A stretch of 64,000 bases of DNA from Bugula neritina (lineage: Eukaryota > Animalia > Bryozoa), in assembly GCA_964035545.1 (NCBI GenBank), contig OZ037770.1, positions 14,374,642-14,438,641 of the forward strand, given 5' to 3'. This document shows, piece by piece, positions 11,858 to 24,559 of this stretch. Under the pieces are notes generated by a model. The model ran no database searches and had not been told where the DNA came from. It saw only the letters and a program-made list of their open reading frames with translations. A program made the position numbers and the translations under genes. Positions within the stretch are counted from its first letter, which is position 1, and every line of letters starts with the position of its first letter.

Positions 11858-14272
11858 CTAGTCATCTATACAAGATGCTTCTTTTTCCATGAAATATCTC
11901 CGAACTCCAGCAATACCCTCAAAACGTAAATTCTTTGGAGGTACCTTCAGTGCATGACAATCAACAAAGTGTAGTTCCTCTAACTTTTCCAAATTCAGTA
12001 TGGCCTTGTCAAAGGTGCGCAGTTTGAAGTTACCAAGAACAGAAAGACATATTAGGTTGGTGAGGCTGTATATTGGAGGAGGCAAAATTTTTAAGTTGTT
12101 GAAGTTGAGGATGAGATGTTCCAGTTTAGTTAGCCGGCTGAAACTAAAATCATAAACCAAACAATTTTATTTATTTAGTTCACATAACTGCTCCATTCTT
12201 TATTCAACCGTGACTCAAGTCTAATAGAACGTAGTTTAAACTATAATGGGGCACAACTCCGAAATCATATATATTTATCTTTTAACTTGTCTTGTAATGG
12301 ATAGTTAGGAGTTGACTTCCCAACACAGATAATTTTATTCATCTCCTATTAACTTCTGGGAAAACCTATTTAACTGTGAACAGAATTAAGCCAAGAACCT
12401 AGTATTCAATATGACACGTATTCTCACCTTTGTGGTAAATCAATAAGATCACACCTAGTCAAGTCTAAATGTACCAACTCGGTAAGTTCACAGACAACCA
12501 CAGGAAGTTGGTGGTTAGCAAACTTGTTTCGGGAAAGATCCAGCTCTCGGAGGTTCTTTAATGATGAAAAACTGCAAACAATTTTCATCTTGACAATAAA
12601 AATTAGAAAGAAAATTGTTTAATTCACATTACTTCTAATCAATTGCATTTAGTTGCATATAGAAAATGCCGAATAAGTATAATTATCTGAGTATGAAGTT
12701 GTGTAGGTTATGTGGATAAACTGATTGTACTAAGTGTGGATATATAGTAAGTGAATGAGACAAAGCTCCAGCAATAGAGGAGAAAAATTGCACACAAGAA
12801 ACTACCAAAAAAACAAGAAGTTGAAAAAGACAACAACAGAGTGAGAAAGAAACACATTGTGGGTTACTCAGTTCAAAGACAAAATTCAACACAGCGGTTG
12901 ATGTTGTTAGATTTTTCCTTCAAGATTGTTCCGAAAAGAGAGGTGTGAAGCATAATTATGTGAGCATTATTGTACAGGAAGTAGCTTTGTATCCAGAAAC
13001 TGACCTCCATGGTAACTCAGTGATATTCAACATTGAAAGGTAGAGGTGAGTAAGATTAGTCAACGAGGACACAACTTCTGGGTATCCTATATTGGTGCGG
13101 CATACCCGTAAAGAAAGAACTTGGAGATGTTTCAAAGAAGCTAAACTACAACATAAAAATAAAATTCAGTGATTGGAAACACTTATACTATGAAAGTTAG
13201 CATAACTTCTTTATAACTGGACTTGTTTTGACTGCCTTGAAAATGAATACAGCAGCAAAAGTTTATATTCCCCGCATTTAATTATGAAATATAGAGTTCT
13301 ACTTTCATAAATGTATTATTTGGGACAAAATTTTAAAGCTCAAATTTACTTCAAGTTACAATTTTTAAAAACATTAAATTATAGAGCGCTTTAAGACGAC
13401 ATAAAAAATTGTTGCATCACCTTTGCAGCTTTTCTGGAAGTTGAGGCAAAACGCACCCAAATAGGTAAAGTCCTTTGAGAGAGGTCAATTTAGAAAAGGC
13501 ATCAGGGAATCCGTTAGTGCTGAAGTCTGTGCTTTGTATCTCTAACTTGCAAATTTCTTTACAGTGCTCTATACTAAGCAAAAATACATCACAGGCAAAC
13601 CATCATTGGAATGCATACCAATCCTAAAATACTCCTAACAGAGTTTTAATTGGTTCAAAGCATCTAAGATGGAGAGTAACTGTCCCTTACAATTCAGTCA
13701 GTAAGAAAAATACTTAAACTGTAAAAAAAAACTAGAAAGACTGAATAATCAAAAATAGTTTAAACACAATCAAAGCGACAATGGTTTGACGAATAAATAA
13801 AACACCAGCTAGCTGTTGCAATAAACAAAGTCGCACTAACTTGCATGATTCAAAACATGTATCGACTGCAAATAAATGACTTACAAAGCTATATCATCAT
13901 CGGATCTAGAGGGCATATATATTCTGAGATGAGTGACACGGGGACAGATAACTTCCATGTTAGGTGCTACACCTGTTACTCCAACATGCATATGTGTTAT
14001 ATAATTTGATCCGATATCTTGAAGTATGGCTCTGTAATCTTTAACAGGTTTCATATTTGAGTTCAAGTCCCACGTGGCCTGAAATGGAGAGATTTCTGGA
14101 ATCTCATTTTCACCAGAATGCCTATACCAAGCCAAGAATTCTGAAACAAAGAAATATTATAAACATTTTGCCATCAGCCTGATAATGTTCAACACTAAAG
14201 GAAATGTTATAATACACCTTGTGGATTTTCTTCAACCCCTACTGTGTTCACTTCATGGGTCGAATCTGTCAT
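11858..14272 (-). CDS. LRR-only protein, paralog A (344 aa, 6 coding exons)
   Basis: Exons 14272-14218, 14140-13885, 13573-13421, 13145-13005, 12571-12428, 12143-11858 (1035 nt, GT-AG). LxxLxxLxLxxN repeats; C-cap LKVPPKNLRFEGIAGVRRYF; no signal peptide or TM segment seen. Confidence 0.88.
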
Positions 14273-14458
14273 AGCTTAGAATGATGCTGAGACAGTATAA
14301 AAATATGGCTAATCCAGATCTCCAACTACAAAAAGAATAGTTGCATGAAACTTCTACAAATAACAAAATGAAAACCAAACTGCTGTACAAATTTCAAGCA
14401 TGAAGTAAATTTTCTCGAAATTTAAGTTATCATTTGTTACGATTCTGATTATCGAAGA

Positions 14459-21923: not shown

Positions 21924-24559
21924 ATGACAGATTCGACCCATGAAGTGAACACAGTGGACGTGGTGGTTGAAGAAACTGGACAAGGTGTATTATAACATTT
22001 CCTTTAGTGTTGAATATTATCAGGCTGGTTTCAAAATGTTTATAATATTTTTTTGTTTCAGAATTCTTGGCTTGGTATAGGCATTCTGGTGAAAATGAGA
22101 TTCCAGAAATCTCTCCATTTCAGACCATGTCTGACTCGAGCTCAAATATGAAACCTGTTAAAGATTACAGAGCCATACTTCAAGATATTGGATCAAATTA
22201 TATAACACATATGCATGTTGAAGTAACAGGTGTGGCACCTAATATGGAAGTTATCTGTCCCCGTGTCACTCATCTCAGAATATATATGTGTGCTGGTTCT
22301 GATCCTAAAATAGATTTGTAAGTCATTTATTTATAGTTGATGACTTTTTTGCAACATGCAAGTTAGTGCGACTTTGTTTATTGCAACAGCTAGCTAGTGT
22401 TTTATTTATTTATCAATAAGTTCACTCAAACACTGGCCATTGTCACTTTGATTGTGTTTAAGCTATTTTTGATTCTTCTGTCTTTTTATTTTTTTCTCAC
22501 AGTTTTGAATATTAATTTACTTACCGACCGAATTGTAAGTGACTGTCAAGTCCTGTATTGTTTGTAAACTGTTATTCTCTGTTTTAGATTCTGTAAACCA
22601 ACTAAAAGTCAGTTATGAGTACTTAAGGATTGGTATGTTTTCTGATAATGATTTGTATTTTTGCATAGTGTAGAGCACTGTAAGGAAATCTGTAAGTTAG
22701 AAATATACCATGCAGAGTTCAGAACTAGTGGATTCCCTGATGTCTTTTCTAAATTGACCTCTCTCAAAGAGCTTTACCTAGATCGCTGCACTTTACCTCA
22801 ACTTCAGGAAGAGCTGCAAAGGTGAGGCAACGGTATTTTCATGCCGTCCGAAGCCATTCTAGAATGTAATGATTTTGAAAATTGTAACTTGAAAAAATAT
22901 TTCAAGCTGCAAAATTCTATAATAAGTATATTGATGAATAAAGAATTCTTTATCAAGTAATGCATATAATCAGTTCGTTAGCTAAATGCTCAAGTAATGA
23001 ACATCAGTAAATACAGAGTTCTACTGTTGTAAAGTATTAGGTAATCAATTAGTTTGCTGACTACAGGTAACTCAAACTAGAAATATAGGTCAATGTTAGT
23101 TAACTTTTAAAGCTTTGACTGTTACGAAATGATGTTTCCAAATACTGAAGTATTCTGTGTTGTAGTTTGGCTCCTTTAAAACATCTCAAAGTTCTGTCGA
23201 TAATAGGGAACCGCACTAATATAGGATACCCAGAAGTTGTGTCCTCGTTGACTAATCTCACTCACCTCTACCTTCCAATGTTGAATATTACTGAGTTACC
23301 ATGGAGGTGAGTTTCTGGGTACAAAGCTACTTCCTGTACAATAATGCTCACATAATTATGCTTCACATCTGTCTTTTCGGAACAATCTAGAAGGAAAAAT
23401 CTAACAACAACTAATGAAGACACATTAACCACTGTGTTGAATGTTGTCATTGAACTGAGTAACCCACAATGTGTTTCTTTCTCACTCTGTTGTTGTCTTT
23501 TTCAGCTTCTTGTTTTTTTGGTAGTTTCTTGTGTGCAATTTTTCTCCTCTATTGCTGGAGTTTTGTCTCATTCACTTACTATATATCCACACTTAGTACA
23601 ATCAGTTTATCCACATAACCTACACAACTTCATACTCAGATAATTATACTTATTCAACATTTTTCTAGATGCAAATTAATGCAAATGGTTAGAAGTAATG
23701 TGAATTAAACCATTTTCTCTCCAATTTTTATTCTCAACATGGAAATTATTTGTAGTTTTTCATCATTAAAGAACCTGAGAGAGCTATATCTTTCCCGAAA
23801 CAAGTTTGCTAACCACCAACTTCCTGTGGTTGTCTGTGAACTTACCGAGTTGGTACATTTAGACTTGACTATGTGTGATCTTATCGATTTACCACAAAGG
23901 TGAGAGAATATGTGTCATATTGAATACTAAAAATAAGTGTATGACAGTCTGGTTTGAGATTAGTTCTTCTATTTATAGTTGATATGCTTGATTGGCTGTT
24001 TTGATGCTTTTATAGTATCCAAGGACAGTCTAATTCTGTTCACTGTTTAAGTTTTCCCAGAAGTTAATAGGAGATGCATAAAATTATCTGTATTGGGAAG
24101 TCAACTCCTAACTATCCATTACAAGACAAGTTAAAAGATAAATATATATGATTTTGGAGTTGCGCCCCATTTCAGTTTAAACTACGTTCTATTAGACTTG
24201 AGTCACGGTTGAATATAGAATGAAGCAGGTGTAAAAACTAAATGCATAAAATTAATTTGGTTTATGATTTTAGTTTCAGCCGGCTAACTAAACTGGAGCA
24301 TCTTGACCTGAGCTTCAACAACTTGAAAATTCTGCCTCCTCCAATATACAGCCTCACCAACCTAATATTTCTTTCTGTTCCTGGTAATGTAAAAATGCGC
24401 ACCTTTGACAAGGCTATACTGAATTTGGAAAAGTTAGAGGAACTACACTTTGCTGATTGCCATGCACTGAAGGTACCTCCAAAGGATTTATGTTTTGAGG
24501 GCATTGCTGGAGTTCGGAGATATTTCATGGAAAGAGAAGCATCTCGTATAGATGACTAA
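21924..24559 (+). CDS. LRR-only protein, paralog C (346 aa, 6 coding exons)
   Basis: Exons 21924-21984, 22062-22317, 22669-22821, 23166-23306, 23756-23899, 24274-24559 (1041 nt, open, GT-AG). Confidence 0.88.

Follow-up and report, generated by a model that had tools for sequence, protein, structure and literature searches.

What is a cluster of genes whose products consist of leucine-rich repeats (LRRs) and nothing else doing in a bryozoan genome, and what is it related to? The stretch of DNA analyzed here, called the window throughout, spans 64,000 nucleotides of the Bugula neritina genome (assembly GCA_964035545.1, contig OZ037770.1, positions 14,374,642 to 14,438,641) and carries three neighboring genes of this kind, A, B and C. 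The initial annotation took them for small intracellular sensors or decoys whose concave, ligand-binding faces are under diversifying selection. Judged by homology, we find that they correspond to the front half of a bryozoan family of LRR-Roc-COR-caspase proteins, and that B and C are conserved at the positions that had been expected to diversify. The explanation that we favor, with a probability of roughly 0.6, is that A, B and C are sensor-only paralogues, most likely effector-less partners, competitors or decoys of LRR-Roco-caspase receptors.

Gene models and the relationship to Roco-caspase genes

Five LRR-bearing exons per gene were recovered from the listing of open reading frames (ORFs) and by reading splice sites (Table 1). 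They are preceded by a short conserved first exon (MTDSTHEV...PQ), which became apparent when the sequences upstream of A and C were aligned to a third copy; its GT donor makes a phase-1 join to an exon starting EFLAWYRHSG. In B the corresponding exon 0, 25 nucleotides long (19924-19900), is conserved and matches the public annotation KAF6023764.1 (331 residues), and the start and exon 0 of A are consistent with the public annotation of its paralogue KAF6023765.1. All introns of A, B and C are GT-AG, and exons 2 to 5 are phase-2 units of about two LRRs each. The encoded proteins comprise an N-terminal cap module (WYRHSG...ITHM...THL), about ten LRRs and a C-terminal cap helix. The three genes are thus full-length and intact, as had been claimed from the sequence, and all seven of the A/C/B peptide triplets quoted as examples of their divergence are present in the spliced models. 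These models served for alignment and for the analysis of substitution rates, and database searches were run with single exons and with KAF6023765.1 and KAF6023764.1.

In the exons of the window and in KAF6023765.1, Pfam reports LRR families only, with the N-terminal exon unmatched. Scores for KAF6023765.1 were 66 bits for LRR_14 (cut-off 40), 52 for LRR_4 (27), 50 for LRR_8 (27) and 38 for LRR_1 (20.6), and exons 4 and 5 from the window exceed the LRR thresholds individually. The same scans detected neither NACHT nor NB-ARC in KAF6023765.1 or the window exons, and neither Roc nor LRRNT or LRRCT caps in KAF6023765.1. All three proteins of the window have an acidic N-terminus, and their Kyte-Doolittle means over 19 residues peak at 1.2-1.5; we therefore see no signal peptide or membrane segment. 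An AlphaFold2 model of KAF6023765.1, the C-type orthologue, is an LRR solenoid (pLDDT 86, pTM 0.85) with 12 short strands located on the LxxLxL segments. The N-terminal module supplies its cap together with the initial irregular repeats, and the far end of the solenoid is closed by a long C-terminal helix. Foldseek matched LRR structures at probability 1.00, the nearest being SHOC2, LRRC8, internalins and the LRR domain of CtRoco.

A relationship to a far larger set of genes emerges at both ends of the proteins. Ten clear relatives of the N-terminal exon were found in the genome. Half of them belong to LRR-only genes, namely A, B and C together with a second pair at C2:5.165-5.173 Mb, D (A/C-type, 344 residues) and E (B-type, 327 residues); the other five stand at the front of genes that run on into an exon of ~680-700 residues. 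When the exons of these five LRR-only and five Roco genes are aligned, columns of R, H, S and G and of I, T and H are invariant. A profile of the exon found 29 loci in the genome and 81 proteins in a library of 1.8 billion, the named ones coming from B. neritina and Watersipora subatra. At the other end, the last exon of C matches 117 genome loci at 25-40% identity, and in roughly 100 of the 117 its homologue forms the first ~97 residues of an open frame of ~600-750 residues. The last exon of A to E aligns in the same manner with the first ~97 residues of an LRR-Roc-COR exon of ~700 residues, the homologous last LRR and cap being 30-40% identical over about 95 residues. In A to E this exon ends 8-10 codons past the LRR cap (...GIAGVRRYFMEREASRIDD, followed by the stop codon), whereas in the full-length genes the chain runs on at the same point into the P-loop (...AVRQYYTDLAKGAGRNLPFATIAVLGNTMAGKT). 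Unlike Roco proteins, A to E therefore stop before the P-loop position and have no Roc-COR.

The full-length relatives nearest to A, B and C lie at C4:23.57 Mb, C3:14.77 Mb and C2:27.17 Mb. Two relatives illustrate the longer architecture. Locus L043 carries the N-terminal exon, LRR exons, a 678-residue LRR+Roc exon and, after these, caspase exons in which a QACSG motif occurs; one of them scores 21.3 bits for Peptidase_C14. A spliced relative from a Logan assembly, P0089, contains LRRs and Roc (31 bits, cut-off 27), and the Roco structure 6hlu of C. tepidum matches it over both regions. Because they have in common the N-terminal exon, the phase-2 exons of about two LRRs and the homologous last LRR and cap, A to E are, as far as sequence homology tells, the front (sensor) half of a bryozoan N-term-LRR-Roc-COR-caspase family with more than 100 genes in the B. 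neritina genome. They differ from that family in lacking Roc, COR and caspase and in forming a group of their own. In a midpoint-rooted tree of the LRR part of the last exon (92 columns, with long branches), eight LRR-only sequences fall together with support of 99/99, on a long branch among the Roco sequences. With the 678-residue LRR-Roc-COR exon as query, tblastn matched the window and the D/E locus through LRR similarity only. No remnants of Roc, COR or caspase were found near A to E or downstream of their stops, which argues that they are not recently broken Roco genes. A full-length search with KAF6023765.1 retrieved nothing but generic LRR proteins (26-42% identity), since the 90% clusters of its true relatives are represented by single-exon ORFs that fall outside the length filter.

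Truncation at the border between LRR and Roc seems to be recurrent. Two tandem LRR-only genes of other subfamilies lie at C7:8034000-8050500. Both consist of an N-terminal exon, 8-9 exons of two LRRs and a last LRR exon that ends a few codons past the cap, and no Roc, COR or caspase was found between them or up to 8 kb downstream. A similar LRR-only end at C1:33923700-33928100 is 81% identical to its full-length neighbor. For the Roco relative at C2:27.17 Mb (C2:27161001-27171000), the NCBI protein KAF6035144.1 (302 residues) stops right past the LRR cap and the spliced Logan protein P0089, from the same 90% cluster (556 residues), continues into Roc; KAF6035144.1 is an LRR-only isoform, an LRR-only paralogue or a truncated prediction.

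Products of the window exons share 90% clusters with two B. neritina proteins, KAF6023765.1 (C-type, 341 residues) and KAF6023764.1 (B-type), the former being the orthologue C' and 92% identical to C. The contig that encodes both, from the earlier B. neritina assembly GCA_010799875.2, is collinear with positions 11189-33567 of the window at 74-86% nucleotide identity, and for this reason presumably comes from a different lineage of the B. neritina complex. It carries intact orthologues in the same arrangement, A' (346 residues), B' (327 as modelled, 331 as annotated) and C' (341). Although non-coding DNA differs by 16-26% between the assemblies, all ORFs and splice sites of A, B and C are intact in both, and the eight copies in the two assemblies retain the start codon, 5-6 exons, canonical splice sites and a stop at the same location. 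Over whole genes, the ratio of nonsynonymous to synonymous rates (ω, dN/dS, by the Nei-Gojobori method) is 0.25 for A-A', 0.14 for C-C' and 0.10 for B-B'. Between the A/C/D type and the B/E type it is ~0.15 with silent divergence (dS) saturated, which indicates that the truncated form has long been kept by selection. On these values A, B and C are maintained genes and not relics.

Gene conversion and selection on the concave face

A and C each occupy one arm of an inverted duplication, whose inverted-repeat pairs are 77-97% complementary. The near-identical intron noticed in the initial annotation is confirmed, with 97% identity over 242 nucleotides and 94% over 433; it is flanked by exons 13005-13145 and 12428-12571 in A and by exons 23166-23306 and 23756-23899 in C. 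We sorted variable sites among A, A', C and C' into an orthologous pattern (A=A', C=C') and a concerted one (A=C, A'=C'). Across exon 2, intron 2 and exon 3 there are 60 orthologous sites against 1 concerted, and from intron 3 to exon 5 there are 57 concerted against 7 orthologous (intron 3, 26 against 1; exon 4, 6 against 2). Since the core shows the orthologous pattern, the A/C duplication predates the split of the two lineages, and from intron 3 onward the 3' halves of A and C have been homogenized by ongoing gene conversion, separately in both. Conversion between the inverted copies thus accounts for the near-identity of the intron. It has also lowered dS between A and C, which is 0.20 compared to 0.29-0.31 between orthologues, so that the contrast between a uniform framework and divergent patches, on which the initial annotation had built, is largely a by-product. 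Divergence of the A and C introns was given up as a single neutral yardstick in favor of these site patterns, since d varies between 0.06 and 0.42 along the mosaic gene. Silent divergence between the assemblies is ~0.45 in exons 4-5 (A, 11858-12571; C, 23756-24559) and 0.19-0.24 in exons 2-3, the faster-diverging part being the one that undergoes conversion.

Some codons nevertheless separate the A-type from the C-type in both lineages. Across the whole gene 10 of these 22 lie on the concave face (p=7e-4), and inside the converted exons 4-5 the proportion is 5 of 6 (p=6e-4). Concave codons in a converted tract are compatible with selection holding two different faces apart, and equally with repeated new change in A. 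The locus is in this respect a natural experiment, in which conversion homogenizes the framework while a few residues of the binding face stay different, and those residues probably decide specificity.

The differences between A and C are focused on the strand and turn of the repeat, as the initial annotation had observed. Nonsynonymous changes affect 22 of 133 sites at positions 2, 3, 5, 7 and 8 of the eleven LRRs and 40 of 673 sites elsewhere, a 3.1-fold higher density (Fisher p=1.3e-4), and of the 26 differences within the 11-residue motifs, 12 are at position 7 or 8. A two-partition codon model for A, C and D, fitted with L-BFGS, gave an ω of 0.99 at positions 2, 3, 5, 7 and 8, which does not exceed 1 but differs from the 0.47 estimated for the rest of the sequence (p=7e-4).

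The claim of diversifying selection across the family is not supported as stated at the xLxLxx sites, for which we estimated ω by maximum likelihood at LRR positions 3, 5, 7 and 8 and compared it to 1. Orthologues and near relatives are significantly below 1, at 0.20 for C-C' (p=6e-5), 0.29 for B-B' (p=0.009) and 0.11 for B-E (p=4.6e-5). B and C are therefore conserved rather than diversified. Comparisons that involve A give higher values, none of which departs significantly from 1: 1.55 for A-C, 1.24 for A'-C' and 0.77 for A-A'. Strand positions 2, 3 and 5 are strongly conserved in every orthologue pair (ω 0.04-0.20), and variation is concentrated at positions 7-8 and the loop that follows.

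A evolves faster than C, with 22 derived replacements against 10, chiefly at repeat positions 7-11. At positions 7-8 the ω for A-C is 2.8 (p=0.005). For the eight codons at these positions in LRR2-5, encoded by exons 2-3, it reaches 34 for A-C (p=3e-5), 3.0 for A'-C' (p=0.04) and 3.9 for A-A' (p=0.012), compared to 1.15 for C-C'. This partition was picked post hoc among about two dozen tests and the p values are nominal, so that only the A-C value would survive correction. For the A copy, then, the proposal of diversifying selection is retained in part: eight codons chosen after the fact exceed 1, while the xLxLxx sites as a set (0.77-1.55) are not distinguishable from it.

A proposed sensor-only role and the alternatives

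How might an LRR-only protein act beside receptors that carry the same module? The concave face of the repeats would bind partners, and A, B and C, having neither Roc switch nor caspase, could not switch or cleave. Their most likely role is that of effector-less partners, competitors or decoys for LRR-Roco-caspase receptors of full length, where B and C would have fixed partners and A a changing one. Regulators that consist of a single domain taken from an immune receptor or adaptor include the CARD-only and PYD-only proteins of primates, the soluble TLR5 of fish and truncated NLR paralogues of plants. By analogy, A to E would resemble them as a duplicated interaction module without effector, found in small lineage-specific clusters with some fast-evolving copies. 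They differ in keeping a Roco-type LRR module rather than a death fold or a TLR ectodomain, and their decoy role is putative. If the Roco-caspase family is an immune or cell-death system, its first candidate regulators would be found in this cluster. The scale is modest, that of a small lineage-specific LRR-only subfamily that is mostly conserved.

Several points weigh against this explanation. The putative tie between A, B and C and the receptors is one of homology, and the window holds no Roco gene. The full-length LRR-Roc-COR-caspase proteins are probable immune or cell-death receptors, their immune role being presumed. That a Roco ancestor was truncated, and not an LRR-only one extended, is suggested by the majority architecture and by the midpoint-rooted tree of 92 columns with its long branches. 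The case for expression consists of the low ω, the unbroken ORFs and the gene models predicted in public records. In the one public run found, the locus is present as DNA contigs with even coverage of introns and spacers and no splice joints over the genes. In the protein collection, the clusters of the exon ORFs yielded genome-derived ORFs and the two NCBI predictions, and none of their members was a spliced product of A, B or C derived from transcripts. Finally, an ω above 1 for A depends on eight codons and a post hoc partition.

The most ambitious form of the idea would go further. In it, sensor-only LRR genes have repeatedly been spun off Roco-caspase receptors as decoys, guards or inhibitors (the A-E clade, the C7 pair and the C1 copy), the faces of A and C are held apart against conversion, and the face of A is engaged in an arms race, with ω above 1 at positions 7-8 of LRR2-5. 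As a whole we regard this version as unlikely.

It could also be that A, B and C are ordinary SHOC2/RSU1-like LRR scaffolds, housekeeping partners with no tie to Roco-caspase proteins, and that A is a redundant duplicate drifting under relaxed constraint. We consider this rather unlikely. The LRR domains of SHOC2, RSU1-type proteins and LRRC8 are the top solved structures in both Foldseek and phmmer searches and have the solenoid fold and the repeat class in common with A to E. The strong conservation of B and C would suit a scaffold, the fast sites of A include structural repeat positions 9 and 11, and over the whole gene ω at the face of A is not above 1. However, the identity to these cytosolic LRR domains is 18-25%, there is no common N-terminal module, and they are conserved across animals whereas the family of A to E is known from bryozoans only. 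In their N-terminal exon and in the layout of their exons, A to E follow the lineage-specific Roco-caspase family rather than conserved metazoan scaffolds, and outside bryozoans the full-length search found nothing closer than generic LRR similarity of ~30-40%. As for drift, A has stayed intact in two long-separated lineages at an overall ω of 0.25, and its face differs from that of C inside a tract that is otherwise homogenized, which pure drift does not predict.

The reading proposed at the outset was that A, B and C are diversified intracellular sensors or decoys, with all concave faces under recurrent diversifying selection in the manner of plant NLRs or lamprey variable lymphocyte receptors (VLRs). 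The threefold enrichment of A-C differences at xxLxLxx positions, the ω of 1.0-1.5 there in paralogue pairs and the elevated values at positions 7-8 (3-34 within LRR2-5) all favor it. On the other hand, orthologues are constrained at exactly the predicted sites in B and C, the value for A is 0.77, and B, B' and E are 94-96% identical as proteins despite a dS of about 0.2. A third B. neritina-like lineage has a C-type exon with the same face residues as C, there are just five such genes in a genome of 216 Mb, and the framework contrast owes part of its strength to conversion. A to C have neither the NACHT nor the NB-ARC of NLR/STAND receptors (Pfam), and, unlike agnathan VLRs, they lack a signal peptide and LRRNT/LRRCT caps and are complete germline genes, collinear in two assemblies. 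We therefore judge this reading improbable. What stands of it is that the proteins are small and LRR-only, have no signal peptide or transmembrane segment and are kin to a probable receptor family; selection for diversity across the family is not supported as stated.

That the genes are unexpressed, functionless 5' pieces of Roco-caspase genes, stranded by rearrangement, is very improbable. In favor of this view, the sole run found with the locus holds DNA, transposons and tandem repeats abound in the region, and the genome contains further truncated family members. Against it, all eight copies in two assemblies keep start, exons, canonical splice sites and stop, and an ω of 0.10-0.25 between orthologues and 0.15 between saturated types is not the value near 1, with frame breaks, expected of relics.

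Effector-less paralogues of LRR-Roco-caspase receptors therefore remain our preferred account of the cluster. We found no publication that describes the A-E genes or the parent Roco-caspase family. The nearest published analogue is the LRR-ROCO family of brown algae, candidate immune receptors whose LRR exons are reported to be shuffled and to evolve under diversifying selection (Teng et al., 2024; PMC11378527). As described there, the algal and the Bugula families are alike in being expanded LRR-Roc-COR genes with LRRs on separate exons. They belong to different kingdoms, however, and on the same description the algal genes have one LRR per exon where Bugula has two, and retain the Roc-COR that A to E have lost.

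The third lineage mentioned above is known from a 2916-nucleotide contig of JGI metagenome 3300002729 that carries C-type exon 1-2. Its DNA is 87% identical to C and likewise to C'.

Coordinates, repeats and mobile elements of the window

Table 1. Positions of the three LRR-only genes, the duplicated arms and the intergenic retrotransposon, counted from the first nucleotide of the window.
Feature	Position	Strand	Remarks
Gene A	11858..14272	-	LRR-only protein, 344 residues, 6 exons; exon mapping, GT-AG introns, unbroken frame
Exons of gene A	14272-14218, 14140-13885, 13573-13421, 13145-13005, 12571-12428, 12143-11858	-	stop codon included
Gene B	16731..19924	-	LRR-only protein, 331 residues with exon 0, 326 from ATG 19360
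Exons of gene B	19924-19900, 19347-19092, 18758-18615, 17831-17691, 17502-17359, 17013-16731	-	
Gene C	21924..24559	+	LRR-only protein, 346 residues, 6 exons
Exons of gene C	21924-21984, 22062-22317, 22669-22821, 23166-23306, 23756-23899, 24274-24559	+	
Left arm of inverted duplication	11769..14335		holds gene A; inverted-repeat pairs I1-I7, I10-I12
Right arm of inverted duplication	21861..24648		holds gene C; partner of left arm
Near-identical intron and exon 4 of A	12428..13004	-	C partner 23307-23899; start of converted tract
Core of A outside the converted tract (exon 2, intron 2, exon 3)	13005..13573	-	LRR2-5; C partner 22669-23306
Non-LTR retrotransposon (LINE) fragment between A and B	14464..15818	+	reverse-transcriptase ORFs 14459-15705; Pfam RVT_1 E=4e-37

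LTR, long terminal repeat; LINE, long interspersed nuclear element.

The LINE fragment between A and B is absent from the collinear GCA_010799875.2 contig and is therefore a lineage-specific insertion. Other mobile elements in the window are a reverse-transcriptase ORF of 699 residues (8334-10433) and a BEL/Pao-type LTR retrotransposon at 56490-61567, with DUF1759, Peptidase_A17, an integrase zinc domain and DUF5641. Tandem arrays of 20-nucleotide units, (AGT)n-type units and (TAC)n occupy 357-1769, 6191-7219 and 42631-44454. Large ORFs at 6172-7275 and 42591-44549 were considered as genes and rejected as tandem-repeat arrays; the ORFs over such arrays are 360-650 residues long, are open on both strands and are not genes. 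The second intron of B contains a 43-nucleotide unit repeated seven times (17937-18243) with 96% matches.

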